Source: Podarcis muralis (taxonomy: Eukaryota). Taken from it: a stretch of DNA of 64,000 nucleotides. Under the pieces are notes generated by a model. That model made no database searches, was not told where the DNA came from, and saw only the letters and a program-made list of their open reading frames with translations. The first letter of the stretch is position 1; each line of letters begins with the position of its first letter. A program made the translations under genes and the position numbers. Below are positions 1,377 through 27,323 of the stretch, piece by piece. The DNA is taken from the NCBI RefSeq assembly GCF_964188315.1, contig NC_135670.1:6572001-6636000 (forward strand). The letters run 5' to 3'.

Positions 1377-1879
1377 CCAGAGGTAACGTAGCCTCGATTC
1401 TGACCAAACTACAGCAAGTCTCCTGATGTACATTGTGTTCAAGGAGGCTTCTCCATATGAACCAGGAAGTGACCTATGTTGTTAATCCATTAGCCAGTGT
1501 GAGACCTGGATGAAGGATTGATTATGCGTCTTTGGCCCAGGGCTCTTGGGTTATGACGATCAATGGCATGTATCAAGTGATGCCTCCACATGAGGGCTCT
1601 TTGCAAAGCTTCCCTTTTTGCCTTTGATGTAAAATGAAGTTGGTGGAACATTATCCCAGTGGGGAGAAGGGAGATCAGCGTGTTGGAATGTGCAGTGCAG
1701 TTATTGTGAGAATCCAGCAACAGCTTCATTAAATACAATTTGCTCATACTCTTTATGGCTATTATTAAAGTAATTTGGTGTGTGATGCTGATGAGGCAAT
1801 TTGTTGGCAGCTAATTAAGACTTTGGGCAGGAGGGGAAAGATCCTGTGTCCCAAAACCACAGACCTGTGAGGCTTAGAG

Positions 1880-1968
1880 TATATAAGCCCATGACATGGA
1901 GAGCTTTTCCATCAGTTCCACCAGAGCTTCAGACATCTCTCAGCTTCCTGTTGCTTGGAAAAGCAGGT
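1880..1968 (+). promoter_or_regulatory. G1 TATA box, non-coding exon 1 (about 1909-1966) and splice donor
   Basis: TATATAA at 1880-1886; ccatcagttcca 29 nt later; cag|GTAAG donor at 1967; no ATG in the exon. Paralogous to the G3 promoter. Confidence 0.8.
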
Positions 1969-3258
1969 AAGAGGGCTGACTCCAGAAGGGTTTGCGAGAA
2001 CACTACTTGCCTTTTCAATGTATCTTTGTCTTCCTGTTTCCTTTCCTCTGGGTTTTTTCCCCTTTAAAATATGGATAGCATGGTGAATCTTAGAGCCGGT
2101 TAAAGTACAGAATGTGCGTCTCTCAAAAAGGGAAGGCGAATCTAAACATTAAGAGGTTTATTAGCTGTTGGCTGGATGCTTGGATGAGCTGCGGATGGGG
2201 ACACAATGGCCACCCAGATGTTGTTGGACTGAAATTCCCATCAGCCCCAGCAAGCAGGGTTGAGGATAAGGGCTGATGGGAGCTGTAGTCTAGGAATTTC
2301 TGGATGACCACAACTTCCCCATCCCTGATATAATGTCACCAGGCTGATGCTCCTGATCAGGCTCTTTCTCTACACGTCCATCACTGCCATTTGTCCAGTC
2401 TGGCTTTCCTTGGACTCCAGGGATATGTGTCTGGCACCATGCGAACAAGATACTGGATGAAATGGGTCTTTAGTCTCATCCAGCAGGGCTTTTCTTACGT
2501 TGTTCTTCTGCAAGCTGTGGGAATTGCCTGCTCTGCACCATTGCACTGCATCTAGGGACACAAAACCTGTGACTCTCCAGATGTCAGGGACTGGGGAGAG
2601 GAGGAAAGGTGGAGACCGCCTCCCCAGCCTAACCCTTCCAGAGAAGAGGAAGACAGTTCAGACAGGGGTTTGAGGGAGGTCACAGCTCAGAGGCAAATGA
2701 GAAGAAAAGCTGGGGAATAATGGGGGGGGGAGGAAGAGGAAGAACGGGGGGGGGAGAGACAGCTGGTGGACACAGTGTATTTAGAAAGCATTACAGACCA
2801 CCTTCCCCCCTTCTAGAACACGGTGAGCCTTGAAAGTAAGAGAGCAAAGAGCTCAAAGGCAGAGGGCACATAGTAGCAGATGTAGAAGTGAAGAATGAGG
2901 AAGTGGGAGAGACAGGGGAGGGGGTGAAGGTTCACCCAGGTCATCAACATTATCCAAGAGGCTGGGTTCCAAAGACTCTCTGTGAATACTGAATAATAAG
3001 CGGATGGTAAGAAACATTCATTGTCTTTGAACTTTCCTGGGCAACTGGCTGTGGGAGTTGCTGGCATCTGCCTGACACTAGATACGCATCAGCCTCCAAG
3101 TCTCACCAGTCATACCAGCACTGTTCTGGTATGAACAGTGATCAGGGAAGATGGGGGAGTAGTGGTTCACAACATCTGGAGGACTGCAGGATCTCCAAAT
3201 TTGAATTAGAGGTACTTGGATATTTCTACATAGGAAGGTCCCCATCCCTGCTTTAAAT

Positions 3259-3605
3259 GTAAAGGGACCCCCGACTGTTAGGTCCAGTCACGGATGACTC
3301 TGGGGTTGCAGCGCTCATCTCGCTTTCCTGGCCAAGGGAGCCGGGGTACAGCTTCCGGGTCATGTGGCCAGCCTGACTAAGCTGCTTCTAGCAAACCAGA
3401 ACAGCGCACGGAAACACTGTTTACCTTCCCGCCGGAGCGGTACCTATTTATCTACTTGCACTTTGACATGCTTTCGAACTGCTAGGTGAGCAGGAGCAAG
3501 GACCGAGCAACAGGAGCTCACCCCATTGCGGGGATTTGAACCGCCGACCTTCTGATTGGCATACCCTAGGCTCAGTGGTTTGGACCACAGCGCCACCCGC
3601 ATCCC
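3259..3605 (+). mobile_element. Sauria SINE in the G1 intron
   Basis: aaagggacccc...aggtccag head; ttaccttcccgccggagcggtacctatttatctacttgcac core; ccacagcgccacccgc end. Confidence 0.85.
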
Positions 3606-3800
3606 AGATATGCTTTAAGGCACAATAAAATGTAAATCTTCTTGTAGTATTATGAATACACATTGTGATAAAATTTAAACAGATTTCTTGCATTGTAAAG
3701 GTGAGGCTAAGTATCTCCCATTGGCCCCAGAACACTAAAACACTTGTCTATCTTTCTACTCCCTCCTGTGTCCTTTCAGACTCATCTCCAACACTCAGCC

Positions 3801-4277
3801 ATGGCAAACTGTGGACCATCCTGTGCTGTCCCATCTTGCGCTTCCACCCCAGTCGTCGGTTTTGGATCAGCAGGTCTTGGAGGCCTTGGAGGCCTTGGTG
3901 GCCTTGGCCTTGGCGACACCTACGGCTATGGCTCCGGCGCCCTGGTGGGATCCGGCATCCCTTCTGCTAGTCTTGGTATTCTTTCTGGTGTCGCCCCTTC
4001 ATGCATCAACCAGATCCCACCATCAGAGGTCGTGATCCAGCCACCAGCCTGCATCGTGACCATCCCAGGACCCATCCTCTCTGCTAGCTGTGAGCCAGTG
4101 GCCGTAGGAGGAAATGCTCCATGCTCCCCTGGTGGTTTGGGCAGTGGGTTCCTCGGAGCTGGTTCTCTTGGAGCCGGTGCTCTTGGAGCTGGTGGTCTTG
4201 GAGGATCTCGTTTTGGACTTGGGAGTCGCTATGGATTCGTTGGAGACAGAGGAAGCATCTGTTACCGCCCCTGCTAA
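3801..4277 (+). CDS. Corneous beta-protein (beta-keratin) G1, 158 aa
   Basis: MANCGPSCAVPSCAS start, beta-core SCINQIPPSEVVIQPPACIVTIPGPILSASCEP, Gly-rich tail ending SICYRPC. Acceptor tttcAG at 3778-3779, 21 nt before the gccATGG start. Confidence 0.96.
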   Translation: MANCGPSCAVPSCASTPVVGFGSAGLGGLGGLGGLGLGDTYGYGSGALVGSGIPSASLGILSGVAPSCINQIPPSEVVIQPPACIVTIPGPILSASCEPVAVGGNAPCSPGGLGSGFLGAGSLGAGALGAGGLGGSRFGLGSRYGFVGDRGSICYRPC

Positions 4278-4799
4278 GTAAATATGGAAGGTTTATTAGG
4301 GAAAAGAATGTGGACTGCAAAACGTTCAAGCCTGGGTTTAAGATATGCTGAGCATCCTCAATTCCTGATGAAGCCACTGGGCATTGGGGGCACCCAGCAG
4401 GCCTGAAAATCAGACCCACAACTATCTTTCATGCATCTATTTCTCATCTTAACATAATCCCCCTCTATCCCACTGTTTATGTGCTTTCCTCTCCCCTGGC
4501 TTTTATTTATTATCTGTACAGCTCTTCTGCACTCCTCCAGCAGACTAAAGAGCAAAACAACAACAACTACGGACTTTTCCCCTGGAATTAATGCCCAGTC
4601 AGTTTGGTACATCTGTGAAAATGGCAGAGGTGGGAAAAGTTTTATAAATCCCACAAATAGAACTTATCTCATTCTGGCTCAAGATTTGCAATACAGAGAC
4701 AATTTATGTATATTTCTTCAGATTTGTCCTTTTCAAAAAATAACCAACTTCTTGAGAATTTGTTCAATTATGTATCTCTCCCCCCACCCCTGGATTCCT

Positions 4800-4805
4800 A
4801 ATAAA
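4800..4805 (+). terminator. G1 polyadenylation signal
   Basis: AATAAA followed by the shared motif ctgcatcatagc. Confidence 0.75.
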
Positions 4806-6229
4806 ACTTACCCTGCATCATAGCTCTGGTCTCCTGTTCTACTTTAGCATTTAGACTCTTTTCTTCCTTAAAGATGGATTACTGTGAAGAGAATCATCTG
4901 ATGATAGAATTCCAATCAAGGCCTTCCATCTCTGGAGCATTCTTTGCAGGATTGGGGCACATTTTCAGGGAGTTCCTAGAATCCTTACATGACACGGCGT
5001 AGGTGGGGTACATTACAGAGGGGGTCTCCAACATTTCTCAGACCAATGGCACCCTCGAGGACTTTCCTGGCTCCAATGTAGCTTCTGAGTGTCCCATTCA
5101 CTGGCTCCTAGATGGTCAGGGCAGTTCTATTTGCTTTCCGGAAAAGTGCCCAGGGCTTGAGTTGGAAGACTTGACACACTCTTTCCTTTGGAATTTAATC
5201 ATTAAAGTTGGTTGAGCTTTGGTTCAGAGTAGACTTAATCACGGGAAGTTGGATCGACGCAGTCCCCTCCACTACCTGTTCAGTCTCAATCACACTTCAC
5301 AAGCATCACTTTAAAAGAATATAAAAACGCACACATAGAGATTCCATTGATAAAGAAAGCAAAAGTGATTTACAGTGGCTCAGTGTAGGGGGAAGTATGG
5401 TGTGGGAGAAGCCACAGGCTGTGTATGTTACTGCCTGTGCCATGTGCCAGCCCTTCCTCCAACCTGGGGAACTGTGGTGGTCCTATCAGCCACCCTCGGG
5501 TCTGCAGCTGCTGCTGCTATTTACTAGGTCAGCTCACGGTAAGACCACCCTTATCTATGGCTGGATTGTGGATGAGGAAACCAATCTGGGCTGTTTCACT
5601 AAGACCTGGATGTCAGGAAACTGACATCGGAGCAGAGTGGAGAGGCTAGGCTCCCCAATGATGCCGGAGAGGGAACCAGTACAGGGGTAGAGAGGGCTTC
5701 CGCTGGGGAAGAAAGCCAAGGTGACACCAGGAAGAAAGAAGGGATGGAGAGCACGTCGGAGGGGAGGCTCCGAGACTCTTCAAGTGAGGTCATTGAGGAG
5801 AGTGGAGGACCACCGGTGGGGACGCCCACTCTGCGCAGAAGGCTTCCGCGCAGAGAGGCGAGAAGGAGGCTGTCCGTGAAGGAATTTTTATGTTGGAAGA
5901 AGTTTAGGAAACGCCCACTGACGGATTCTGCCAGCGACTGAAGCAGTCGTGCCCGAGGGGGGGTGCTCAGCCAGGGAAAACGCAACAGCCTCACGCAGTT
6001 TGGAGCAGGTGGAGGTTACACACAAGCAACCCCAATTCCCATGATACTGGGTGAACTGGGTGCATCTGGTCTCACCCTGTTGTGCCCACGCGGGTATTCG
6101 GCGTAGTATCATGGTAGACTTGGCACTCAAGGAGGGGGAGTTGCTGCTGTAGTCTATAGAGATTCTCTTCTTCCCTTCCTCTCTCCCTCCCAGCTCTCTG
6201 TTCATTTTGGGTAAGATCCAGAGCATGTG

Positions 6230-7740
6230 TCCTTAGCATTGGGCAATCAAGACAGATTATGGCTTCTGCTGCTTTACTGCCCACCTCACCGACTAGCAGT
6301 CTCCCTGCCTGAGCTGATGGAGCTGGTTTCGGAGGCAGTGTTGAGGAGACCTAGACTGCTGGTTCTGGGGGACTTCAACAACCATGCCCAGCTTGGCATG
6401 GCTGCCATGACAACCATGGTTCTCCTCCAACATGTAACTGGCCCAACACATCTGGACCCTGTTTTCTCAAGTGGGCAGGAAGAGAAAAGAGAGAGAGAGA
6501 AGGGTAGATTCGTAATCTGGGGAACAGGGTTTGCGTCTCCGCTCCTCCACATGCAGCTGCTGGGTGACCTTGGGCCAGTCACACTTCTCTGAAGTCTCTC
6601 AGCCCCACTCACCTCACAGAGCGTTTGTTGTGGGAGAGGAAGGGAAAGGAGAATGCTAGCCACTTTGAGACTCCTTAGGGTAGTGATAAAGCGGGATATC
6701 AAATCCAAACTCCTCGTCCTCTTCTTCTTCTTCTTCTCAGCAGCTTTCGAGACCATTGACCATGGCAACCTTCTGGAACGACTCTCCAAACTTGGGGTGG
6801 GTGACACTGCTTTGTGCTGGTTCCAGGCCTACTTGGATGGTTGTTCCCAGAGGGTGTTGCTTGGGGAGTGCTTCTCAGCCTCATGGAACCTTCAATGTGG
6901 GGTTCTGCAGGGCTCAATCCTATCCCCCACATTGTTTAACATCTACATGAAACTGCTGGGTGGGTTTATCCAGAGGTTTGGAGTATGTTGTCAGCAGTAT
7001 GCTGATGGCACTCAGCTCTATTTCTCCTTTACATCTGCAGGGGAGGCAATGGAAGTGCTGGACCAGTGTCTTCCTTCAGTAATAGACTGGATGAGACCCA
7101 ACAAACTGAAGTCAATCCAGATAAGACTGAGGCACTGTTAGTGGGTGGTTCCCTAGACCAGATGGCTGAGAGATCACCTGCTCTTGATGGAGTTATACTT
7201 CCTCTGAAGGAGCAGGTTCATTGCTTGGAGTTACTCCTGGATCCTTTGCTGTTGCTCGAGGCTCAGGTAGCCTCAGTGGTCCAGAGTGCCTTCCATCAGC
7301 TTCAGCTGGTGGCCCAGCTATGCCGCTATCTGGACAGGGATAGCCTTACTACTGTTGTCTATGCTCTGGTAACCTCAAGGTTAGATTACTGCAATGCATT
7401 ATACATAGGGCTGCCTCTGAAGACACTTTGGAAACTTCAGCTGGTGCAGAATTCAGTGGCCAGGTTGCTCACTGAAGCAAGACAGTTTGAGCATATTACA
7501 CTGATCCTGCACTGGCTACTAGTTAATTTCTAGGCCCAATTCAAAGTGCTGGTTTTGACCTATACAGCCTTAAATGGCTCAGGACCGCAATGCTCCAAGG
7601 ACCACCTCTTTCTATATGAACCTACGTGGTACCTGCGATCATCTTCTGAGGACCTCCTTTGTGTGCCTCCTCCTTGAGAGGTCCGGAGGGTGGCAACATG
7701 AGAACGGGGCCTTCTCTGCATGTCCTTTCGTCCCAGCTGT
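6230..7740 (+). mobile_element. Degenerate L2-clade LINE ORF2 (endonuclease and RT fragments)
   Basis: Frameshifted ORFs with LLVLGDFN, SAAFETIDH, GVLQGSILSPTLFNIYM, YADGTQLY and VTSRLDYCNALY motifs. Confidence 0.85.
6500..6738 (+). mobile_element. tRNA-derived SINE inserted in the L2
   Basis: Matches the copy at 30734-30982 and ends in a (CTT)n tail. Confidence 0.75.
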
Positions 7741-9083
7741 CTTCTCAGCATATCTTCCCAAATGGATTCAAACCATGTAACCTCCTGAAAATAAAAGGTA
7801 TCCATATGAAGCTAATGGATTACAGGCCATCTACACTAGCAAAGTTTTTCTCTGGTGGTTCTGGTCAGGAGATGTGGAATACCAGTAGCTCAGAAGGAGA
7901 GACCTATTCACCAGCAGCAGTGCCAATTCACAAAGCAGTCGGCTCTGCTGACAACCTTTATAAACTGTCCCTGCAACCCCTCAGTGCAGATGTTTTCCTG
8001 AGACAACAACAGACATCACCAACTTCTGCTGTCTCTCCATCTCTACTCCCTGCGTCATTGGCCTTTGTGCCCCAAAGCACTTACAGCAGTACTATGAACA
8101 ATTGCAATGAACTGAAACATGAGGTGCTCAGTCGTGCCAAACATAAGTTGGCAAAGACAGCCTCTCTCCCACACAGAAATGGAAACTCCCACACAGAAAT
8201 TTGCTGTTGCAACAGCTGGCTATGACAAGTGCCCAGGTGGCAGAGGCCTAGCAAAGCTGTCACCAGTTAAAACCAAGTCTTCTGGCTTTATGAATGTTTC
8301 ACACACAACAGTGGACAGTGATGGTTCTAAGAGTTCTGGTTTGTGGAGTCATATAAGCAGTGCTTTTTTTAGGGGAAATGGTGGTGGGCAAGTGCCCTGC
8401 CTTGCCCCCACAACATTGGGTGCCCGGGGCATGCCAACATCACCCTGGCATGCATACATGATGTCCGTATGCCCTGTGGCATGCTGACTTCACTTGGAAG
8501 AAGAAGCTCAGATCCTTCGCCTAATGTACATTGCTTATCTGAATACTGAAATAAAGAAGAAAAGGACTATTGTCCAGGTGAAAATCACAGTAAATTCTGC
8601 AATATGTCTGAAACAAACTTGCAAGCTGTTTTCTGCCATTCCTAGCCAGTCCCCTTCATTGTTACCCTGTAGTCATACATGAATTACTTTAAAGACTGAC
8701 TTGAGATTATCATAGTTTGAAATTGCTTACGAGCATGGAAACGTTCGGAAGCAGTTAAACGAAAATCATATAAGACCACAGTCTTGTGTACTTTTTACCA
8801 TCTGCTGTTTATGTTTTTTAAACACTTGGCAAGATTCCAAAACACAGTAGTTTTTAACTAACGTGATTGGTTTTACAATTTCAAGCCAGTATTATGTTCT
8901 CAAACATAATTTTTAAGAGAAGGTGTTAAAAATGCAGAATATTCCACCCACCATCATAAGGCTCTTTGTTAAAGTCTCTACAAATGTAAAGACCTTAGGA
9001 GCAAAATCAACCATTGAGCTGAGTTCATTCCTCAACAGTGGACCTCTGGGGGAATATCTAATAGGACACCGTTATATCTGTAA

Positions 9084-9426: not shown

Positions 9427-10242
9427 ATATCTGTAAGACAGCCTAGATTAGCCAGAATGGGGTTCTTCTCACATTAAGCAATAATTTAATATATTAGATA
9501 GATTTACAGGTGTGCATAGCTCTAGCAAACTATGTCCAAAGTAGTGAAATGCTACAGACTCGCGCTGAGATTCTATACGACTAAATAGCATATGTTTTCT
9601 GGAAAGGTATAATAGGAGTTTAGGTGAGTAATGCTGTGGAAAAGTGTGCTGGGGAGGACTGGTACAATGTTATGCCAATCTAGAAAGACAATATCTACGC
9701 TCCAAAAAGACTAAAATATGGGCCCATATATTGTCTCTACTAATTTCTTAGGCCTAATGTTGCTTTTTATGCCCCTGCTGGCCCAGGCAGCAGCTGGTGA
9801 TTCTACAGCAGCAGTCCAGCTGACCATTCGTGGGTCAAACCCAACTAATTTCAACTCAGAGTATACCCATTTAAAGTTCTGACCATAAAACTGCCATACA
9901 CCGTCATTCTCATGGGCTTGAATAATATTGGAGTCAACTCTAGGGGAGGTGTTCATGTATCATGTGTTTCTGACCATTCTATCAGTCAAAACACTTCTAC
10001 CTGCTCCCTGCAATGATTCCACACTCTCCACCAACCTCCACATGGTATTATGGGGGTTCTCCCGACCCTCCAGAGAAGATATGAAGGACGTGCAGTTATG
10101 AGTGGGCACAGGAGAGGGAGAAAGGCCTGTAGCACTAGTGGGAGTCCCAGTGCTGATTTCTGCTGGAATGCTGGGTTGATTGAATCCAGTCCTATGATCT
10201 TAGAAGAAAACCCAAAAACCAGTGCTATGATGCAGTGTAAAT

Positions 10243-10248
10243 TTTATT
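10243..10248 (-). terminator. G2 polyadenylation signal
   Basis: tttatt on the plus strand, with gctatgatgcag immediately upstream on the plus strand. Confidence 0.75.
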
Positions 10249-10751
10249 AGGAATGAAGAAGACAGCATTTCAGTGAACAACAAGCAGGTTTGAACAGGGC
10301 AAAATGCAAAAAGCTCTTGCGATTGAACAGCTTATTTGTTTCTGAGAGAGGTGATGTATTTAAATAATATTATTGCTCCGCTCCTTTACAGGAGGTCCCC
10401 AGTTACCCAGAAGATCTGGTGCAAATGAGTGTGCTAATTTCATCAACAGAGAGAATAATTCCTGTGCTCTTTACTCTGCTATAGGAACATATGCCTTGAA
10501 GAGCCATAGGCAAATAAATAAATAAACATCAGAGAGGAACATAAATAGTGGGACACAGTGGAGCAAGTTTAGATAGAAAGAGATGCATGAAAGATCTAGC
10601 TGGGCCTGATTCCCAGAGATGCTGAACATTCCCCCAGCTCCTATTGGTACTGACTAGGATTAGGGTGCTCATCATAGCTAAACTCAGGTGTAGCTATTCT
10701 GCTGTTTATCTGGGTCTGTTTTCTTCTCGTTAGTTGATAGTCCATGTGAAC

Positions 10752-11228
10752 TTAGCAGGGGTTGTAACAGATGCTTCCTCTGTCTCCAACGAATCCATAG
10801 TGACTCCCAAGTCCAAAACGAGATCCTCTAAGACCACCAGCTCCAAGAGCACCAGCTCCAAGAGAACCGGCTCCTAGGAACCCACTGCCCAAACCACCAG
10901 GGGAGCATGGAGCATTTCCTCCCACAGCCACGGGCTCACAGCTGGCAGAGAGGATGGGTCCTGGGATGGTCACGATGCAGGCTGGTGGTTGGATCACGAC
11001 CTCTGCTGGTGGGATCTGGTTGATGCATGAAGGGGCGACACCAGAAAGAATACCAAGACTAGCAGAAGGGATGCCGGATCCAACCAGGGCACCGGAGCCA
11101 TAGCCGTAGGTGTCGCCAAGGCCAAGGCCACCAAGGCCTCCAAGGCCTCCAAGACCTGCTGATCCAAAACCGACGACTGGGGTGGAAGCGCAAGATGGGA
11201 CAGCACAGGATGGTCCACAGTTTGCCAT
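10752..11228 (-). CDS. Corneous beta-protein G2, 158 aa
   Basis: 4 aa differences from G1 and 3 from G3. Acceptor AG at 11250-11251 (minus), 21 nt before the ATG. Confidence 0.96.
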   Translation of the reverse strand: MANCGPSCAVPSCASTPVVGFGSAGLGGLGGLGGLGLGDTYGYGSGALVGSGIPSASLGILSGVAPSCINQIPPAEVVIQPPACIVTIPGPILSASCEPVAVGGNAPCSPGGLGSGFLGAGSLGAGALGAGGLRGSRFGLGSHYGFVGDRGSICYNPC

Positions 11229-11800
11229 GGCTGAGTGATGGAGATGAGTCTGAAAGGGCATAAAAGGGAGCAGAAGCAAAATTGTAGACAAGAAGTGCTG
11301 CAATGTTCAGGAATTTGGGGAGATATGTAGCCCCATCACCATCACAATACAGAAAATCTGTTTAAATGTCATCAAAATGTGCATTTATAATCCTAAAAGA
11401 AGAAACACATCAGTACTTTATTAAAAGCAGAGATGACAACCCTTCGATGTAGAGAGGTGAGAGTTCCTATAAGTAATGTATGGAGAAGATGTGGTCCTTC
11501 AGATATTGCTGGCCCATCTCGTCCTTCATCTTGTCATCATGGTGGCCAGCCAGATGACTTTGAGAAACTCTCAAGCAGGACCTGAATGCAACAGCAAAGT
11601 CTCTTCCTGAAGTTTCTTGCCACTCCAGTGTTATTCAGAAGCACCACTGCCTTTGGCACATGGAACATAGCCAAAGAACACAGCCAACATGAGCTGGCTC
11701 ATTGGTTGCATTGCTGAGCTGCTTTACATTCTACCCAAATCTTAGCTCCTGTAATTCGAAGTGGTCAAAGCTACCAAGATGACCTGGACAAGTGAAGCTT

Positions 11801-11885
11801 ACCTGTTCCTTTGAGGAATGGAAAGGCAAGAGAAGCTGATCAGTGAAGTTGTTGGAGGACTCTGGGTAGGTGAGGGCCTTTTATA
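11801..11885 (-). promoter_or_regulatory. G2 TATA box, exon 1 (about 11803-11855) and donor
   Basis: TATAAAA at 11879-11885 (minus); ccaacaacttca 30 nt later; cag|GTAAGC donor at 11802. Confidence 0.8.
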
Positions 11886-12404
11886 CTGTGTCTGTGGCAT
11901 CCCTGCTCAATGACACCTCTTTGCTCTCAAGATCCGCCCTCAAAATCTGCTGGTTTCATCATGTGCAAAATTACTTTAATAATCCCAGTGGTTTCAGGGC
12001 CAAGGACTCTGCTGTCCTCAGCTTATTACAATAAATTACTCAGATCGTCTTTTCAAGTTCTCTCTGTCTTCTCCCTGGGAATTTTCATTAATATTTTAGT
12101 ATCATGCCTAGTGACTTGATGTCCCACACTGACGACTGTTGGTCTTAGTGGGACTTATTTGTGAGAAAACATGCATGGATTTTGAGCTGTTGATTTTGTG
12201 TTGTTTTTTAAAGAATATTTATTGAAACTTTTCAACATAATACAACGAAAACCAAGCTAATCTGAATAAAATGAAAGAAAAAAAGGATTTGAAACTAAAA
12301 CTCCCATCATTCCCAATAATTGGTAGTGCCGGCTAGGGCTGATAGGAGTTAGAGTGCAACAACATCAGGTGAGTCCCATAGATTCCTTGCCCCTGTTTTA
12401 ACTT

Positions 12405-14183: not shown

Positions 14184-14321
14184 CAGGCAAAAGCAAACCC
14201 GGCCCTCCAGATGTTTTGAAACTACAACTCCCATCATCCTTGACCACTGGTCCTGTTAGCTAGGGATGATGGGAGTTGTAGTCCCAAAACATCTGGAGGG
14301 TGCCTAGTTTGCCTATGCCTG
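14184..14321. mobile_element. hAT-type palindromic MITE
   Basis: 8-bp TSD ttctaaac (14176-14183, 14322-14329); internal ctacaactcccatcatcc/ggatgatgggagttgtag palindrome. Confidence 0.8.
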
Positions 14322-15700: not shown

Positions 15701-16095
15701 TGGCTAAGTGGGCCTTTGGTTTATGGCCTAATCCAGCCTGGCTCTTCCTGGGTTATGATGATGAGTGGCTTGTGTTCAGTGACGCCTCCACATGGCCTCT
15801 TTGCAAAGTTTCCCTGCTTTATTTGATCTGAAATGAAGCTGGCAGAACATTATCCCAGTGGTGGGCGAAGGAAGATCAACATGTTGGAATGTGCAGTGCA
15901 GTTACTGTGAGAATCTAACAACAGCTTCATTAAAGACAAATTGCTCCAACTCTTCACGGCTATTATTAAAGTAATCTGGTGTGTGATGCTGATGAGGCAA
16001 TTTGTCGGCAGCTAATTAGGACTTTGGGCAACAGGGGAAGAGGGGGGAAAAAACCACCGCTGTGTCCTGAAACCACAGACCAGTGAGGCTGAGAG

Positions 16096-16184
16096 TATAT
16101 AAACCCATGGATTGGAGAGCTTTTCCATCAGTTCCACCAGAGCTTCCGACGTCTCTCAGCTTTCTATTGCTTGGAAAGGCAGGT
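16096..16184 (+). promoter_or_regulatory. G3 TATA box, exon 1 (about 16125-16182) and donor
   Basis: TATATAAA at 16096-16103; ccatcagttcca at +29; cag|GTAAG donor at 16183. About 15725-16330 is homologous to about 1530-2110. Confidence 0.8.
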
Positions 16185-16913: not shown

Positions 16914-17427
16914 ATACAGTAAATAGGCAGACACTATTGGTCAGGCTGCCTCTCCCCACATCCATCCCTGCCACTCCTCAAATCCTTGCATTCCTTGCAC
17001 TGTCGGGACAGGCATCTGTTTGGCCAGCATGAAAGCAAGAAACTGCACCAAATGGGAATTTGGTTTTATCAATCAGAGCTTATCTTAAATTGTTCCCACA
17101 GATTGTATGGACATCGTTTCCATGACCGTGGACATTGCTTCCATGAGACCTTCAATGGCTACTAGGCATGACACCTTTGCTGTGCCATCCATGGCCAAGA
17201 GCAGTAATGCTTAAGAAGAACGGAGGGAGGTGGGTGCTCTTGTGCTTGTGTTCTACTTACAAGGCTCCCATTGCCACATAAGGAAGACCACAGTGAGAAG
17301 ATAATGCTGGACTAGATGGGCCATTGGGTAACCTAACTTAGGCTTTAATGCATTGCAGCACTCCTTACCTATAATGAACTTTCTGCTCCCTCCTGTGTCC
17401 TTTCAGACTCACCTCCAACACTCAGCC

Positions 17428-17904
17428 ATGGCAAACTGTGGACCATCCTGTGCTGTCCCATCTTGCGCTTCCACCCCAGTCGTCGGTTTTGGATCAGCAG
17501 GTCTTGGAGGCCTTGGAGGCCTTGGTGGCCTTGGCCTTGGCGACACCTACGGCTATGGCTCCGGCGCCCTGGTTGGATCCGGCATCCCTTCTGCTAGTCT
17601 TGGTATTCTTTCTGGTGTCGCCCCTTCATGCATCAACCAGATCCCACCATCAGAGGTCGTGATCCAACCACCAGCCTGCATCGTGACCATCCCAGGACCC
17701 ATCCTCTCTGCCAGCTGTGAGCCCGTGGCTGTGGGAGGAAACGCTCCATGCTCCCCTGGTGGTTTGGGCAGTGGGTTCCTAGGAGCCGGTTCTCTTGGAG
17801 CCGGTGCTCTTGGAGCTGGTGGTCTTAGAGGATCTCGGTTTGGACTTGGGAGTCGCTATGGATTCGTTGGAGACAGAGGAAGCATCTGTTACACCCCCTG
17901 CTAA
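17428..17904 (+). CDS. Corneous beta-protein G3, 158 aa
   Basis: 2 aa differences from G1. Acceptor AG at 17405-17406. Confidence 0.96.
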   Translation: MANCGPSCAVPSCASTPVVGFGSAGLGGLGGLGGLGLGDTYGYGSGALVGSGIPSASLGILSGVAPSCINQIPPSEVVIQPPACIVTIPGPILSASCEPVAVGGNAPCSPGGLGSGFLGAGSLGAGALGAGGLRGSRFGLGSRYGFVGDRGSICYTPC

Positions 17905-18392
17905 GTTCACACGGACTATCAACTTACGAGAAGAAGACAGACCCAGATAAACAGCAGAATAGCTACATCTGAGTTTAGCTATGATGAGCACCCCAATCCC
18001 AGTCAGTCCCAATGGGAGTGAGGTTCAGCACCCCTGGGAATCAGGCCCGGCTAGATCTTTCATGCATCTCTTTCCTATCTCAACTTGCTCCCACTATTTA
18101 TATTCCTCTCCGATGTTTGTTTATTTATTTGCCTAGAGCTCTTCAAGGCATATGTTCCTATAGCAGAGTAAAGAGCACATGAATTATTCTCTCTGTCAAG
18201 GAAATTAGCACCTCAGTTGCACCGGAACTTCCAGGTAACTGAGGACCTTCTGTAAAGGAGAGGAGGAATAATATTATTTAAATACATCACCTCTCTCAGA
18301 AACAAATAAGCTGTTCAATTGCATGAGCTTTTTGCATTTTGCCCTGTTCAAATCTGCTTGTTGTTCACTGAAATGCTGTCTTTTACATTCCT

Positions 18393-18398
18393 AATAAA
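18393..18398 (+). terminator. G3 polyadenylation signal
   Basis: AATAAA followed by ctgcatcatagcactgg. Confidence 0.75.
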
Positions 18399-19156
18399 AT
18401 TTACACTGCATCATAGCACTGGTTTTTGGGTTTTCTTCTAAGATCATAGGACTGGATTCAATCAACCCAGCATTCCAGCAGAAATCAGCACTGGGACTCC
18501 CACTAGTGCTACAGGCCTTTCTCCCTCTCCTGTGCCCACTCATAACTGCACGTCCTTCATATCTTCTGGAGGGTCAGGAGAACCCCCATAATACCATGTG
18601 GAGGTTGGTGGAGAGTGTGGAATCATTGCAGCGAGCAAGTAGACATGTTTTGGCTGATAGAATGGTCAGAAGCACATGATACATGAACACCTCCCCTAGA
18701 GTTGACTCCAATATTATTCAAGCCCATGAGAATGACGGTGTATGGCAGTTTTATGGTCAGAACTTTAAATGGGTATACTCTGAGTTGAAATTAGTTGGGT
18801 TTGACCCACGAATGGTCAGCTGGACTGCTGCTGTAGAATCACCAGCTGCTGCCTGGGCCAGCGGGGGCATAAAAAGCAACATTAGCTGTAAGAAATCAAA
18901 TAGAGTCAATGGTACAATATATGGGCCCATATTTGAGTCTTTTTGGAGCCTAGGAATTGTCTTTCTAGATTGGCATAACATTGTACTAGTCCTCCCCAGC
19001 ACTCTTTTTTATAGCATCAGTCACCTAAGCTCTTATTATACCTTTTCAGAAAACATATGCTATTTAGTCGTATAGAATCTCAGCGCGAGTCTGTAGCATT
19101 TCACTACTTTGGACATAGTTTGCTAGAGCTATGCACACCTGTAAATCTAACTAATA

Positions 19157-19766: not shown

Positions 19767-20228
19767 GTATTAAATTATTGTTTAATGTGTAGAAGAGTAG
19801 AAGAGTGCAAGGGCTACACACCTCCCCAAAAAGCTCCAAGAGGAGTATTGGGGTGTCTTGGGGTCCTGCTACTCACTGATGGTACCTTGGCATATCCTGT
19901 CCCTGCCTCTGTACCGAAAGGCGCAGAAAGTGGGGGGGGGGGGGGGAGCTGAGCCCACCGGTGAGCTAGGCACCAACACAGCTCCATAGAGCAAAGCCTC
20001 TGATCTAGCCACGAGCAGTTACCTTTCCAATACATTGAGCCGATTGAAAGGTGAGGAGGAGGATCAGTTTAATTTGACTAATTTAATTCAGCAAAGCGGG
20101 AGGGGGAAAAGGAAGTCTACTCCCCTTTTCGGGTCTTCGAGCACGAAACCCATACAAGTGAAGTGCTGATGAAGTTTACTTTGGTAGACAAGTTAACTAA
20201 TGAACAATAAGGACTAAAAGGTTTTACA

Positions 20229-20368
20229 CAGCTTTCGTTTCAACCTGTGGGTCCCCAGATGTTGTTGGACTACAACTCCCATCATCCCTGAGCTCCGGCC
20301 TTGCTAGCTAGGGGGGATGGGAGTTGTAGTACAACAACATCTGGGGACCCACTGGTTGAGAAAGGCTG
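20229..20368. mobile_element. hAT-type palindromic MITE
   Basis: caacctgtgggtccccagatgttgttggactacaactccc / gggagttgtagtacaacaacatctggggacccactggttg inverted arms. Confidence 0.7.
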
Positions 20369-20767
20369 GTTTATATCAATCTCATTTTTTAAAAAAAGCA
20401 AACTTGACTTGAATTCAATTTGAACCTGAACTTATCTTATGGCGCTAATGAACTTGACTGAAAATGGAGGTTAAACCTGAGAGGGATTACAGTGTTATTT
20501 AATGGAAGAATACTATAATTTTCTTCTCTGGAAGAAAGACAGGACTGACTCTCTGAATTTTTTTTACCTTTGGGAAAGAGTTTCTGGGCTTTTCAGAGTC
20601 AGTGAAGATACCAAACCTAATGGAGTTAGAATTGTGGACTTATTTTATTAAAAGGCACCAGCTGCTTAAAAATCAAGATTGAAAGAAGAGGACTATAATA
20701 CCCATAGCTAATATTGGACTAAATCGGATTTAAAATAAAAAATCAGTTTTATTTATAAGGAGACAAT

Positions 20768-21022
20768 TCCAGGTCACGTGGCCAGCGTGACAAAGCTGCA
20801 TCTGGTGAGCCAGCGCAGCACACGGAAACGCTGTTTACCTTCCCGCCAGTAAGCGGTCCCTATTTATCTACTTGCACCCGGGGGTGCTTTCGAACTGCTA
20901 GGTTGGCAGGCGCTGGGACCGAGCAGCGGGAGCTCACCCCGCCGCGGGGATTCGAACCGCCTACCTTTCGATCGGCAAGTCCTAGGCGCTGAGGCTTTAA
21001 CCCACAGCGCCACCTGCATCCC
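20768..21022 (+). mobile_element. 5'-truncated Sauria SINE
   Basis: Matches the 3' two-thirds of the full-length copies. Confidence 0.8.
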
Positions 21023-21154
21023 ACACAGTTTTATTTATATTGGATACTAAAAATTGCTTTGGTGTGAAGGAATGCTAAGATTTGAATATATATAATTGTT
21101 AAATTTTGTATCTGTGAGCAATGTGGGAGGAGGGGAGGGAAGAGGTTAGAAGTA

Positions 21155-21385
21155 CAGTGGTACCTCGGGTTACAGACGCTTCAGATTACAGATGCTTTAG
21201 GTTACAGACTCCACTAACCCAGAAATAGTACCTCAGGTTAAGAACTTTGCTTCAGGATGAGAACAGAAATTGTGCGGTGGCAGCGGGAGGCCCCATTAGC
21301 TAAAGTGGTACCTCAGGTTAAGAACAGTTTCAGGTTAAGAACGGACCTCCAGAATGAATTAAGTTCTTAACCTGAGGTACCACTG
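21155..21385. mobile_element. Tc1/mariner MITE (family A)
   Basis: TA-cagtggtacct...aggtaccactg-TA. Confidence 0.85.
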
Positions 21386-21407
21386 TACTGGTTTTCTCTA
21401 CTGAATA

Positions 21408-21533
21408 CAGTGGTACCTCGGGTTAAGTACTTAATTCGTTCCGGAGGTCCGTTCTTAATCTGAAACTGTTCTTAACCTGAAGCACCACTGAAGTGTATGT
21501 AACCTGAAGCATATGTAACCCGAGGTACCACTG
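21408..21533. mobile_element. Tc1/mariner MITE (family A), internally deleted
   Basis: TA-flanked TIRs; the central part is missing relative to the other copies. Confidence 0.8.
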
Positions 21534-21559
21534 TATAGCAAAATGACTTTGACCAAGTA

Positions 21560-22180
21560 CTGATAAAGTTAAAAATAACACTTTCCTTGGTGGAAAGGAC
21601 TCTTTGTTTTGAAATTTAACAATGTAGAGGAAGCTGGGAAACAGGGAGAGAATTCCCCCCCCCCCATACCAGATTAGAAATGGCAGAAGAAGGAAAATGT
21701 TAATAATGCAGTTTCTCAAATTTGGAAAAAAAAACCCCGATTTACTTTCAGAGGCAGTGGAACAATTTAAAGAGGGGAATGTAAAAACCACTAAGGTGGG
21801 AATTGTAGAGGAATGAGGTTCGAGGAAAATGCAAGGATCAGTAAGGGTGGTCCAAGATAAAACTGGCATCCCGTGTGAATAAATTTGGGAGGCTTTGACT
21901 GTGATGAAGATGAAACAGGAAGGGGGGGCAAATTGTATGAAAGGCTACTATATGTGGTGGTAATGTAAAGTTATCAAAAAGGCCTGGGAAATGACATAAA
22001 AGACTTGAAGACAATGTTGAAAATGATTTTTTGTTTTAAAAAAACCAGAAGCCATGATATTAAAAAAGGGAAATGTTTAATGCATATTTTTCAAGTGTTG
22101 TTTATAGACTTCCACATTAGTAAAACTTACAAAAATCACTTGTATTAAGATGAGCAAGGTTTTAACATTGGACTGTTAAG
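21560..22180 (+). mobile_element. Degenerate L1-clade LINE ORF2 C-terminal fragment
   Basis: A-rich; decayed zinc-knuckle-like tatatgtggtggtaatgtaaa (HMWWxC-like). Confidence 0.45.
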
Positions 22181-22184
22181 AATA

Positions 22185-22425
22185 CAGTGGTATCTTGGGT
22201 TACGAACTTAATTCGTTCCGGAAGTCCATTCTTAACCTGAAACCATTCTTAACCTGAGGTACCACTTTAGCTAATGGCGCCTCCCGCTGCCGCCGTGCCA
22301 TCAGCGCACAATTTCCGTTCTCATCCTGGGGCAGAGTTCTCAACCCGAGGTACTACTTCTGGGGTGGCAGAGTTTGTAACCCGAAGTGTTTGTAACCTGA
22401 AGCGTTTGTAACCCAAGGTACCATT
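22185..22425. mobile_element. Tc1/mariner MITE (family A)
   Basis: TA-cagtggtatctt start; same internal sequence as the other copies, in reverse orientation. Confidence 0.8.
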
Positions 22426-23044
22426 AATAAAACATTAATATTTTAATGTTTCAATATTTTAATGTTGTATTTTAATCTTGTTCTTAAGTTGTATTCATTA
22501 AACTTGTTTTTATTATTGCTTGTTAGCCACCCTGAGCCAGGCCTGGGCTGGGGAGGGCGGGGTATAAATAAAATTTATTATTATTATAACCACTGTATAA
22601 TGTTTAACAGACGTGCATGAATAAGCATATAACAATAGAACCAAGAGGAGAAGTGGAGGGAAGTCAATTGAGTTAAAATTCATGATATGTTTGTAGTGTG
22701 TGTTTTTCTTTTTGTGTCATTATAAAATCAATAAATTGTATTTAAAAAACAACAACAGAGTATCTGCACCACCATGGATTCCTCTGCCATATCTTCTATT
22801 GCTCTTCTCTCAGAACAGTTGTCAACGTTTCCCTTTTTAAAAGAGAAATTCCCTTATTCTGAATAGGATTCCTCGCAAGAAAAGGGAAAAGTTGACACCT
22901 ATGTCTCTCAGGCCTTTGGCAGACTTCTGGCATCAAAGACAACAGAGGTATTAGAACAATTGGTTAAATCCTTTGAGACTAAAAAGACAGTGGTCAATTT
23001 TTATACATATTTGGTATCAGTAAATAAATTTGATATAGTAATTT

Positions 23045-23050
23045 AATTTA

Positions 23051-23110
<60 letters not shown>
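23045..23110. repeat. (TTA)n microsatellite
   Basis: Direct reading. Confidence 0.95.
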
Positions 23111-23111
<1 letters not shown>

Positions 23112-23398
23112 TTATTTATGATATCCCTTTCACCTCCTCCAATGTTCAAGGGTTCTGATGGTCTCTAGATGGCAAGTTCTGGAAATACTTGCTGCACTGT
23201 GAACAGGATGGTGGGTGCTTGAACCAGTCCAAGAGGATATGTGTTAGGTTCTTAAGGCTGTGACCCTGAACCGACTTACTTTTGAGTAAGTTGCATTGAA
23301 CTGTATTGAAAGGAACTTATTTCTTGGTAGACGGATATAGGATTGTGCTGCCACATAAAAGGAAAACCAGAAAGCCAGTGCTATGATGCAGAAAAAGT

Positions 23399-23404
23399 TT
23401 TATT
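23399..23404 (-). terminator. G4 polyadenylation signal
   Basis: tttatt, with gctatgatgcag upstream on the plus strand. Confidence 0.75.
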
Positions 23405-23906
23405 GGGAATTTCAAACAGTAAAAGTATTCAAGTGAATACTAAGCATACTGGAAGACAATAAAGCAAAAAAGAACACATTCCAGTGAACAGCTTCTCCTT
23501 TAGAATTATTTTTTTCAGGTTGGAGGTAGAGTAGAGGGTCCTACATTTATAGAACATTCTTTCCACCTTCCTTTACATTAAGTCCCAATTACACATATTT
23601 ACACTTGCATGCTAATTTCATAGACATAGTGAATGGATCTTGTGCTTTTCTTCCCAATGCAAATTGGTGTGTTTCAAAGAGACGTAGGCAAATAAATATA
23701 GTAGCAAGCAGGAGAAAGTGAGATAAAATTAAACTGGAAACAGCTGCATGTTCTAGATGGGCCTGATTACAAGGGATGCAGAACACTCTCCCAGCTCCCA
23801 TTGGGACTGCCTAGGGAGTTTGGGTGCTCAGCATACCTAAAATCAGACCGAAATAGTCCACCACAGATCTCTTTTTCTTTCCTCCTTCTTGACAGACCGT
23901 GAGAGC

Positions 23907-24401
23907 TTAGCAGGGGGTATAGCAGATGCTGCCTCTACGCCCCACAAACCCATAACGGCCACGGCCCCCCAAACCACCAGAGCTAGACCCCAGAAGACCT
24001 GCACCACCATAGAGCCCTCTGCCAAATCCGCTGCCAAATCCGGATCCATAACCTCCAGCAGCACATGGGGTGTTGCCTCCGACAGACACAGGCTCACAAC
24101 TGGCAGAGAGGATGGGTCCTGGGATGGTCAGGACGACAGAAGGTGGCTGGACCACAACCTCTGCTGGTGGGATCTGGTTGACGCATGAAGGCTGGACTCC
24201 AGAAAGAATACCAAGACTGGCAGAAGGGACGCCGGATCCAACCAGGGCACCGGAGCCATAGCCAGAACCATAGCCGAATCCACCGCCCAATCCACCGCCA
24301 AGGCCAAGGCCACCGCCAAAACCACAGCCGGCTGGTCCAAAACCAACGACTGGGGTGGAAGCACAAGATGGGACGGCGCAGGAAGGTCCACAGTTAGCCA
24401 T
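23907..24401 (-). CDS. Corneous beta-protein G4, 164 aa
   Basis: MANCGPSC...SCVNQIPPAEVVVQPPSVVLTIPGPILSASCEP...RRGSICYTPC. Acceptor AG at 24410-24411 (minus). Confidence 0.96.
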   Translation of the reverse strand: MANCGPSCAVPSCASTPVVGFGPAGCGFGGGLGLGGGLGGGFGYGSGYGSGALVGSGVPSASLGILSGVQPSCVNQIPPAEVVVQPPSVVLTIPGPILSASCEPVSVGGNTPCAAGGYGSGFGSGFGRGLYGGAGLLGSSSGGLGGRGRYGFVGRRGSICYTPC

Positions 24402-25423
24402 GGTTGAGTCTGGAAAGACATAGGCAGGCACATATTATAGCAAAGAAACATTGTAATTCACAAGAGCAATGAAAATTATGGGTTGCATCCAACTACCAAT
24501 CTGGGTCGACATGTCTATTGATTAAATGGGTCTACATGGAAAAACATGGAATACATGGAGAAACATGGAATACAGCCCTATGTATTCTCAGTGGCACAGT
24601 ATATCAAGAGAGGGATATCCCAGAACATGTACTGAGCATCTTTATTTTCCCCCTGGTTAGATCTGAAGCTGGTGTTGCCAGTCTTTTGAGGCCACTAGGG
24701 ACATTTTATTCTTGACAATTGTTCCCATGGAGTGAGGAGAGAAGTGGCGTATCAGAAATTGACTACCGTATCTGAAGAACCGGGAAAAGAGGCAGGGACG
24801 TAATTTTAGTTCAGCAACACCTGTGGACTCAAGGTTGAAACACTGGTGCAGGGAGTTCTGAGCTAGATGTTCTAACAGCCAATACCATGATGGTTATGCT
24901 CTGCCTCACTAGTTACAGGCATCATGCTTCTGAATACCAGCTGCTGGAAACTTCAGAAGGGGAGAGTGCCATTTCATAGGGATCTTATGGATAGGCTTTC
25001 AACAGGCATCTGATTGGCCTATGTGGGAACAGGATGCTGAACTAGATGGCCATTTGCGTGATCCAATAGCAGCTCCCAATACTGCCATTTAGATCAGGAT
25101 TCTGGAAGAAATCTCTCCCCCCTCACATACAGAATTACATCTCTGTTTCCAAAGAGAGAAGAAATATTAAATCAGTTTTAGGTTTGTATCATAGGTAGAC
25201 TTTCCAGCATATAGGGTAAAACATGCTGAGAATGCGACATTCTAAATCCCCAGCTAACTGTTGAAAGACGTTGGAAATTCAAAAGAGCTAGATATGTGTG
25301 TGGAAGTCTAAGAGATATACTTCAAAGGAACTAGGTAGCACAAATACACCATGGAGATTTAGTATAAGTGTGCATTAGCATTTTAAATCTCCCAGTCATG
25401 TCCTTCATTGACAGGTATAAGTA

Positions 25424-25665
25424 CAGTGGTACCTCGGGTTAAGAACTTATTTCGTTCCGGAGGTCTGTTCTTAACTTGAAACTGTTCTTAACCTGAAGCA
25501 CCACTTTAGCTAATGGGGCCACCCACTGCCACCGCGCCACTGCTGCACTATTTCTCTTCTCATCCTGAAGCAAAGTTCTTAACCCGAGGTACTATTTCTG
25601 GGTTAGTGGAGTCTGTAACCTGAAGTGTCTGTAACCTGAAGTGTCTGTAACCTGAGGTACCACTG
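25424..25665. mobile_element. Tc1/mariner MITE (family A) in the G4 intron
   Basis: TA-flanked cagtggtacct TIRs. Confidence 0.85.
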
Positions 25666-26294
25666 TAAATGGGAGCAAACTGGAGCTTCTTCCGAGATGA
25701 ATCAGTGTAACTATTCTAAAAGCTCTCCATAAAGAATCACAGAACTGTAGCTTTTTTACACCATCAATTCCTATCTCCCCGGTTTGATGCAGGCAATCCA
25801 GACCTCCAGTGCAGGAAATATTGACTACCCAACTCTCTATTCAATCGCTTCCTTCATCAAACCAATCGGTTTCTTTGGGGAAGGATTCTGGCTCTGTTTA
25901 AAGCATCTACTTTGTATACAAAAGGCCCTAGTTCAACACCCAGCATCTTCAGGTAGGGGTGACAGGTACACCCAGTGTGGAACCCAATGTAGACTAGTTG
26001 TGGGGAATCTTTTACTCTCCAGGGACTGCTGAACTACTACATCCATCATCCCTGGCCATTGGCCATGCTTGCTAAGGATGACAGGAGCTACAGTTCAGCA
26101 ACCTCTGGAGGACCAAAGGTTTCCCACTCCTAGTGTAGACAATACTGAGCTCGGTAGACCAATCATCTGACTCAATATAAGGCAGCTTCCTATGCTCCCT
26201 GCTTTCCTACAAACTGTGCTATGTCCAACCAAGATTGACCTTCCTCTAGCTTTTACCCATTTGATCTATGCAAGGACTTGGACAAGCCAAGCTT

Positions 26295-26380
26295 ACCTGT
26301 GTTGTTTTGATGAGTGGGAAGTTGAGAGATGATGAGAGGTGAAGCTGTTGGTGAACTGTGGAAGAAGGAGAGCTTTTATA
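26295..26380 (-). promoter_or_regulatory. G4 TATA box, exon 1 (about 26297-26351) and donor
   Basis: TATAAAA at 26374-26380 (minus); ccaacagcttca at +29; cag|GTAAGC donor at 26296. Confidence 0.8.
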
Positions 26381-27323
26381 CCATCCTCACGGAGTCCCTA
26401 ATGGTTAAGAAACGCCCCTTCACGCTTAATGTCTCAATTATCCACGATCAAAATCTGCTGCTTCCATCATAGTCTAAAATTGCTTTAATAAGCCAAACCT
26501 TGTCAGGATGCCAACTCTGTAATCAGCTCATTACACAACATGTTCATTTTTTCCTTCCATTTCTTCCCTCCGGGAATTGTTCACTGTATTCCGTTGGCTT
26601 GGGAAGGAATCTCGTTGGGGGAAAAAGTGGGCCTTATTTCCTTTTCGTTCTGTTTTTAAATATACAGCATTTTTAAACAAATGAAAATACAAAGAAACAG
26701 CAACTATAACAGAGCCTCCAAGTGTCCCAATTTTCCAGAGACAGTCCCGGATTTACAAAAGCTCACTCGGTTTCCGATTTAGTCCCAGAATGCCCCACTT
26801 TTCCCTAGGATTTCCCTATTTTCATTTGATAAATGTTGGAGGGTATGCAGTTATGCAACCCCTGAGCCTAAGAGATAAGTAATTATACAACCTTTAGAAG
26901 ACATCTGAAGGCAACCCTGTATAGGGACATTTTTAAATGTCTAATGTTTTATTATATTTTTACATATGTTGGAAGCCGCTCAGAGTGGCTGGGGCAACCC
27001 AGAATCTCTAGCCATTTTGGAAGTAAAATTACAGGAAAAGATGTGCAGGTCCCCTCAAAGCAATTTCTGTGACATCAGACATGAGCGTGGTGGGGATCTT
27101 GTATATTTTTCTGGAAGCTGCAGTTAGTCACCTTTTCAAAGCCACAATTTCCAGAGTCCCCATGTTTGTTAAACAGTTGATTGTTAAAGCACCCTGGAAA
27201 TTGTAATTCTGTGCTGGGAATAGGGGTCCCCTAACAACTTTTTGCTCCCTTAACAAACTGCATTTACCATTCTTTGGGGACTTTAAATATCCATAACTAT
27301 TTAAAGCAGCCTAATGATGCTTC

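Follow-up and report, generated by a model that had tools for sequence, protein, structure and literature searches.

Species-wise coding exons and orthologue-wise promoters in a corneous beta-protein gene array of the wall lizard Podarcis muralis

Introduction

Gene conversion between loci that is limited to coding sequence is known from the human gamma-globin pair, the Drosophila amylase genes and the Hsp70 duplicates, and conversion from arm to arm is known from large palindromes, such as those of the primate X and Y chromosomes, and from inverted-repeat gene pairs. Here we analyse a stretch of 64,000 nucleotides of the Podarcis muralis genome (assembly GCF_964188315.1, contig NC_135670.1, positions 6,572,001 to 6,636,000; hereafter the window), which is part of the lacertid array of corneous beta-protein (CBP, or beta-keratin) genes. 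A listing of open reading frames (ORFs) and Pfam scans identified eight two-exon CBP genes in it, on alternating strands and here called G1 to G8, each with its entire coding sequence (CDS) in exon 2 and its intron in the 5' untranslated region (5'UTR). Comparison with the orthologous cluster of Lacerta agilis (genes prefixed La) leads us to conclude, with considerable confidence, that recurrent gene conversion homogenises exon 2, mostly between the arms of two head-to-head inverted repeats, G2/G3 and G4/G5, and leaves the promoters untouched.

Like the families with coding-limited conversion, this array has paralogues that resemble each other within a species more than orthologues do across species, discrete tracts with sharp edges, and regulatory flanks that diverge independently. 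It differs from them in that the exchange is mostly between head-to-head inverted arms, that 1-1.3 kb of non-coding 3' flank belongs to the tracts, and that the promoters are of different types rather than diverged copies of one. With the palindromes it shares inverted arms round a unique spacer, homogenisation that is independent in each lineage, and conserved arm limits; however, palindromes measure tens of kb at >99% identity, whereas the arms here are 1.8-2.2 kb long and 93.75-94.8% identical, the spacer carries promoters and first exons, and each arm is the 3' part of a gene only. We therefore present the array as a clean, well-documented example of a known process, not as a new process.

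In protein trees, beta-keratins frequently fall into clusters specific to one species, and the usual interpretation is that the genes expanded independently. Concerted evolution has been described in the same skin-gene complex, for the loricrins of birds (PMC6447390) and for mammalian KRTAPs (PMC4180150), and in the available part of a paper on the wall lizard it is suggested for CBP genes without tests (Genes 2024;15:1136, PMC11431283). The family and gene structure treated in that part of the paper are those studied here, where the tracts, their edges, their timing against an orthologous cluster, and the discordance between promoter and coding sequence are measured. In the literature searched, subscription papers aside, we found no measured account of promoter/coding discordance by conversion in CBP genes.

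Materials and Methods

About 70 kb of L. agilis CM020432.1, merged from overlapping pieces that were reached gene by gene, served as the orthologous yardstick; an 81-bp gap remains between two of the pieces. A homologue search with G5 returned no L. agilis G5, and the locus was found by the gene-to-gene walk instead. For quartets consisting of two paralogues in two species, informative sites were classed as orthologue-wise or species-wise, and incongruence was assessed by these site patterns, by a run-length permutation test and by approximately unbiased (AU) tests. Promoter identities were taken from a single multiple alignment of promoter plus exon 1, as free-end pairwise global alignments came out degenerate. 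Ages are Kimura two-parameter distances (K2P) between paralogues scaled to the orthologue (species) divergence, and are given as multiples of it with 95% ranges. Signed positions are relative to the ATG, and unsigned positions are those of the window.

Results and Discussion

Coding exons are homogenised within species along sharply bounded tracts

The L. agilis sequence is collinear with positions 1072-64000 of the window at 86-91% identity, and its eight genes have unchanged orientations. An apparent lack of orthology between the introns of G4 and LaG4 (K2P 0.6) was rejected as an alignment artefact of a ~580-bp insertion in the LaG4 intron.

Within this collinear framework, G2 and G3 form a head-to-head inverted repeat whose arms are 93.75% identical over 1,824 bp and enclose a unique spacer of about 6.0 kb, and G4 and G5 form another, with arms 94.8% identical over 1,949 bp and a spacer of about 9.5 kb, so the layout of arms and protected spacer is present twice in the window. 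The two promoters and first exons of each pair, along with most of the two introns, are situated in its spacer; the G5 promoter, for instance, lies outside its arm and within the G4/G5 spacer (Table 1). The G2/G3 tract consists of exon 2 and 1.3 kb of 3' flank; that of G4/G5 takes in exon 2, about 1 kb of flank and also ~0.65 kb of intron.

The quartet sites leave little doubt that these segments have been exchanged. From -72 to +1779, the G2/G3 quartet has 81 species-wise sites, 62 of them in non-coding 3' sequence (3'UTR and flank), against 3 that are orthologue-wise. The tract ends sharply at -78 and +1799, and all 31 sites upstream of -78 are orthologue-wise. In the G4/G5 quartet, 77 species-wise sites extend from -582 to +1404 and reach into both the intron and the 3' flank. 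G1, which is direct to G3 and inverted to G2, has only the CDS in common with the G2/G3 pair: the CDSs of G1 and G3 are 97% identical, and identity falls to 64-67% right past the stop codon. From -10 to +446 all 13 sites of the G1/G3 quartet are species-wise, while its flanks are orthologue-wise (53/53 sites upstream of -53 and 57/59 downstream of +480), and a species-wise run of this kind was reached in none of 100,000 permutation shuffles. Exon 2 of G7/G8, the control quartet, has 65 orthologue-wise against 5 species-wise sites. Segment trees of the CDS, the 3'UTR and the 3' flank recover the same species-wise clades, and K2P within the tracts is 0.03-0.09 between paralogues of one species, below the 0.06-0.14 between orthologues. 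A substitution that is present in both paralogues of one species and missing from both orthologues has been copied between the paralogues, and such copying has homogenised these exons independently in the two genera.

Purifying selection on the protein alone, without any exchange of DNA, has next to no probability as the source of this likeness. The high identity of G1 does stop exactly at its stop codon, as such selection would have it, but selection cannot give paralogues the same new substitutions, as at the 13 species-wise sites in the G1/G3 CDS, nor does it account for the 62 species-wise sites in the non-coding G2/G3 3'UTR and flank or for the dozens in the G4/G5 intron and flank.

The protein sequences agree with these tracts. 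G1, G2 and G3 each encode 158 amino acids, and G2 differs from G1 by 4 residues and from G3 by 3, just as the original prediction, made from the window's sequence, had counted in calling the G2 protein G1/G3-like; G1 and G3 differ by 2. The same prediction called the G4 protein G5/G6-like, a similarity that holds and can be refined, since G4 is a mosaic: it is 100% identical to G5 from -250 to +200 and G6-like (97-98%) from +204 to +350, and after +350, up to +1240, G4, G5 and G6 are all ~98% alike.

A perfect match of this length, about 450 bp between G4 and G5, might be expected if the assembly had collapsed or cross-stitched near-identical paralogues into false mosaics, and the window does contain two N gaps (47185-47359 and 63625-63753). 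We nevertheless consider an assembly artefact extremely improbable: an independent assembly of another genus, that of L. agilis, is built in the same way and has arms of 94-95% identity, the arms in the window are still 4-9% apart in K2P, and RNA contigs agree with the 3'UTR of G2 itself at about 99% identity, whereas that of G3 is only ~92% like it.

Independent and recent duplication of exon-2 segments in each species, without gene conversion, would also make paralogues within a species more alike than orthologues, and one such event has a precedent, as G6 in the window did acquire its tail by a 3.2-kb inverted duplication that has no L. agilis counterpart. Against it, gene number, order and orientation, promoters, introns and flanks are all collinear between the species, and the tract edges coincide in both. 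The L. agilis tracts run from -75 to +1829 for G2/G3 (94.9% identity), from -51 to +487 for G1/G3 and from about -700 for G4/G5, and the inner edges of the first two lie at -77 and -53 in the window, so that the same segments would need to have been replaced at the same edges twice. Moreover, tblastn searches for relic coding exons near G2, G3, G4 and G5 found no displaced old exon, and nothing besides an orphan tail of G6 at 42714-42830. Shared edges together with the lack of displaced exons make independent re-duplication very unlikely; the mechanism was probably heteroduplex-based conversion rather than repeated re-duplication.

Promoters follow the orthologous history

The eight promoters have a module in common, namely an AT-rich box, ATGATG, an AATTTG-like element and then the TATA box, and those of G2 and G4 have further common blocks outside this family-wide module. 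Over promoter plus exon 1, G1 and G3 (A-type) are 88-90% identical and G7 and G8 85%; G2 and G4 (B-type) are about 61-70% identical (61% in the multiple alignment), and every other pair 40-52%. A BLAST match of 328 bp (E = 1e-23) joins the G2 and G4 promoters, and their homology stops ~20 bp into the intron. The two are thus each other's nearest paralogues, at a similarity far weaker than that of G1 and G3. The original prediction had called both pairs paralogous, citing motifs in the promoter and exon 1 of G2 and G4 and TATA spacings of 14,216 bp (G1-G3) and 14,495 bp (G2-G4); the spacings proved exact, the motifs are present in both genes, and both pairings recur in the trees. In the tree of window promoters alone, support is 100 for (G1,G3), 100 for (G7,G8) and 76/88 for (G2,G4). 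In a tree of 16 promoters, from the window and L. agilis together, each of the eight pairs with its own orthologue (G2 with LaG2 at 100/98) and the (G2,G4) clade is supported at 93/93.

The site patterns of the promoters are the reverse of those in the coding exons. The G1/G3, G2/G4 and G4/G5 promoter quartets have 112, 122 and 143 orthologue-wise sites, respectively, and no species-wise site, that is, 0 exchange-type sites out of 377. The promoters evolve as ordinary orthologues, outside conversion, and in this respect the prediction that they retain their own history while the coding exons are overwritten was borne out.

For G2, promoter and coding ancestry disagree, as predicted, and swapped groupings are rejected both ways. 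AU tests on promoter data reject a G1+G2+G3 grouping (p = 0.015 with the window only, 0.026 with 16 sequences) and a G2+G3 grouping (p about 1e-113 and about 1e-32, respectively), and the G2+G4 grouping is rejected by the CDS (p = 2e-5) and by the 3'UTR (p = 1e-36). The separate trees for each segment, which had been proposed together with such tests as a check, are accordingly incongruent for G2. The corresponding claim for G4 holds in part: its CDS is indeed G5/G6-like, but its promoter data alone do not reject G4+G5.

G2 appears to be an old recombinant

The G2 intron from -304 to -77 is 64% identical to the G1 intron (K2P 0.50-0.55), with a local alignment score of 66 against a shuffle maximum of 16, and this 3' part of the intron has 62 orthologue-pattern and 0 species-pattern sites. 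Its separation from G1 dates to 5.3x the species divergence (95% range 3.9-7.6). The corresponding ratios for G1-G3 are 2.6x (1.9-3.6) in the promoter, 4.8x (3.7-6.4) in the intron and 4.0x (3.1-5.4) in the 3'UTR, and that of the G2-G4 promoter is 8.4x (6.2-12.2). We infer that G2 is an old recombinant, whose promoter, exon 1 and 5' part of the intron are of B-type and were joined to a 3' intron part and exon 2 of A-type. On sequence grounds, the B/A junction can be placed in the intron, somewhere between -553 and -304, and the A-type body of G2 appears to be about as old as the split of G1 and G3. As the intron was already G1-type at 5.3x, the junction is an old breakpoint and not the trace of a recent replacement of a G4-like exon, which modifies the origin that had been proposed for G2. 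At -77, where the G2/G3 arm has its inner edge, the G3 intron carries unrelated sequence, which would fit conversion halted by loss of homology.

These ages also bear on the origin that the original prediction gave to the array, in which a convergent pair of ~14.3 kb (G1, G2) was tandemly duplicated to yield G3 and G4, after which G3 replaced an exon 2 of G2 that had been G4-like, and G5 replaced that of G4. The G1/G3 and G2/G4 promoters are, as this origin would have it, each other's closest paralogues, at the two similar TATA spacings given above; the +-+- orientation suits a duplicated pair, and the 95% ranges of the G1-G3 intron and the G2-G4 promoter just touch. A single duplication is, however, at odds with the unequal depths of the two pairs, as the G2-G4 promoter is several-fold deeper than the G1-G3 promoter and deeper than the G1-G3 intron and 3'UTR. 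Nor is there a 14.3-kb period in L. agilis, where the spacings are 16,387 bp (G1-G3) and 18,339 bp (G2-G4); these values and lineage-specific insertions, such as a repeat in the G1 intron, make the near-equal spacing in the window coincidental. The homology found between the supposed units is limited to genes and dispersed repeats, although at K2P of at least 0.45 neutral DNA would be hard to detect in any case, and G2 has had an A-type body since roughly the time when G1 and G3 separated. We therefore regard the tandem duplication as unlikely. Overwriting by inverted neighbours holds for G2 with G3 and for G4 with G5, yet it is not the whole of the exchange, since the CDS of G1 has also been converted and its partners include the direct repeat G3.

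Probable recurrent conversion between inverted arms: mechanism, objections and implications

In the recurrent conversion that we favour, non-allelic gene conversion would repeatedly copy one arm of G2/G3 or of G4/G5 onto the other, and a shorter tract, of CDS only, would link G1 to G2/G3. Conversion would end where the flanking homology ends, hence promoters situated in unique spacers would never be included. The outcome would be near-identical G1, G2 and G3 proteins produced from two unrelated promoter types, A for G1 and G3 and B for G2, with the B-type promoter common to G2 and G4 and the coding exon of G4 belonging to the G5/G6 group.

Several points weigh against this reading. The 93/93 support for the (G2,G4) promoter clade falls short of decisive. 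Promoter data do not reject G4+G5 (AU p = 0.22 with the window, 0.10 with 16 sequences), which makes the promoter/coding discordance weaker for the G4 half, nor do they reject G4+G5+G6 (p = 0.054, 16 sequences). No remnant of an 'original' coding exon of G2 or G4 was found in the tblastn searches, so the first cargo of the B-type promoter is not demonstrable. The sole RNA joint from G2 exon 1 has low depth and lands at 11275, a non-canonical position that precedes the canonical acceptor by 26 nt; with so odd an acceptor, it does not establish that the B-type exon 1 is in normal use. Lastly, as two species only are compared, the timing is coarse and most transfers are without direction.

The A- and B-type promoters may confer different expression. 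It is doubtful, though conceivable, that the inverted-repeat layout, with no more than the coding exon and 3'UTR in the converting arms and both promoters sheltered in the spacer, is a maintained device and not a by-product, by which one protein is kept identical and expressed from two promoter types. If it were, the layer of the epidermis, the site on the body or the shedding stage could set the promoter types apart, and crossing-over between the arms could flip the spacer, so that the two promoters trade places with respect to the enhancers around them.

Judged by their promoters, introns, flanks and order, the loci are one-to-one orthologues, and it is because of conversion that their coding exons nevertheless cluster by species. 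Trees of CBP coding sequences will thus mistake homogenised orthologues for lineage-specific expansions, and CBP orthology and counts of gene births are better taken from promoters and flanks than from coding sequence. The array also offers a natural experiment, with one protein behind two promoter types (G1 and G3 versus G2) and one promoter type before two proteins (G2 versus G4), which could help to separate regulatory from protein contributions to the formation of scales, claws and shedding layers.

Gene models and transcripts

The eight genes are built alike (Table 1). In all of them a TATA box is followed 82-87 bp downstream by a GGTAAG donor that closes a short non-coding exon 1, a pyrimidine-tract AG acceptor lies 9-21 bp before the ATG, and the GT-AG intron measures 0.55-2.7 kb. 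The available part of the wall lizard paper gives P. muralis CBP genes a TATA promoter, a non-coding first exon and only one coding exon (PMC11431283), and the present models agree with that structure. All six proteins tested (G1, G2, G4, G5, G6 and G7) scored 29.8-38.8 bits against the beta-keratin core box, PF02422, for which the Pfam cutoff is 25 bits. The closest named database proteins of the cluster are lacertid 'scale keratin-like' and 'claw keratin-like' proteins; the G2 protein is 91% identical to a protein of L. agilis, and that of G7 is almost identical to one of P. muralis. An exact-sequence look-up of the G2 protein gave no match, and neither did cluster look-ups of three L. agilis proteins.

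The gene models are partly supported by RNA contigs. Two RNA-like contig runs, both apparently 3'-biased, cover G2 at 10226-11275, with no coverage in the intron or the 3' flank, and a loose end of adapter-poly(T) at 10226 marks the G2 poly(A) site (end at about 10226-10238). In one contig, of depth 64, the joint leaves from the donor predicted for G2 exon 1, 11803|11802. A second joins the end of G1 exon 1 to exon 2 by a canonical splice and was placed on G2 through close similarity. With this apparent 3' bias, the contigs do not allow exon 1 use to be quantified, and a raw RNA-seq run yielded partial, non-specific matches only.

Table 1. Genes, promoters and conversion tracts in the window (positions in nucleotides from its first letter)
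Feature	Strand	Position	TATA	Exon-1 donor	ATG	Stop	Remarks
G1 gene	+		1880	1967	3801	4277	
G2 gene	-		11885	11802	11228	10752	
G3 gene	+		16096	16183	17428	17904	
G4 gene	-		26380	26296	24401	23907	
G5 gene	+		34113	34198	35223	35729	
G6 gene	-		48437	48350	46337	45870	
G7 gene	+		51183	51265	53934	54443	
G8 gene	-		61575	61491	60569	60066	
G1 promoter, A-type, with non-coding exon 1	+	1544-1966	1880	1967 (GT)			exon 1 about 1910-1966
G2 promoter, B-type, with non-coding exon 1	-	11803-12087	11885	11802-11801 (GT)			exon 1 about 11855-11803
G3 promoter, A-type, with exon 1	+	15746-16182	16096	16183			
G4 promoter, B-type, with exon 1	-	26297-26583	26380	26296			
G2 intron, 3' part (-304 to -78)	-	11306-11532					homologous to G1 intron, not to G3 or G4
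G1 tract	+	3748-4279			3801	4275-4277	last ~50 bp of intron, exon-2 5'UTR, whole CDS
G2 arm of G2/G3 inverted repeat	-	9492-11305 (widest 9450-11305)					exon 2 (CDS 10752-11228), 3'UTR, 3' flank
G3 arm of G2/G3 inverted repeat	+	17351-19156					last 77 bp of intron, exon 2 (CDS 17428-17904), 3'UTR, flank
G4 arm of G4/G5 inverted repeat	-	23119-25049 (widest 22904-25049)					~650 bp of intron, CDS 23907-24401, 3'UTR, flank
G5 arm of G4/G5 inverted repeat	+	34572-36518 (widest 34572-36808)					CDS 35223-35729

Further rearrangements in the array

Besides the long tracts, a patch of ~100 bp in the core box of G5 (about 35469-35568; +246 to +345) is 89-92% like G1-G3 and just 76-80% like G4, G6 and LaG5, and its protein version is also present in a P. 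muralis database entry (P0056). It is a short conversion patch with a donor of G1-3 type. In the G8 intron, at about 60615-60646 on the minus strand, a relic G7-like acceptor and ATGGC start module lie ~45 nt upstream of the acceptor in use, which suggests that the 5' end of the G8 coding exon has been replaced.

G6 is a chimera. At 42830-46008, the 3.2-kb inverted copy of the G5 3' part supplies its tail, and the orphan tail adjoins this copy. The insertion is missing in L. agilis, where LaG6 retains a G7/G8-type tail and the flanks are contiguous, so the chimera is a derived state of the lineage of the window; the L. agilis gene with a G4/G5-type tail is instead LaG7. Just past G8, L. agilis has a further gene (P0020; 10001-10510 of its piece, TATA 28754 in the merged sequence) with a G6-type exon 1 and donor, and promoter types thus recur along the array beyond the window.

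Mobile elements lie close to the genes as well. ORFs like the reverse transcriptase of long interspersed nuclear elements (LINEs) are found at 6227-7533, between the 3' ends of G1 and G2. The repeat in the G1 intron, at 3254-3606, resembles a short interspersed nuclear element (SINE) and is one of ~10 copies in the window with 75-92% identity; it is missing from LaG1, which marks it as a lineage-specific insertion.

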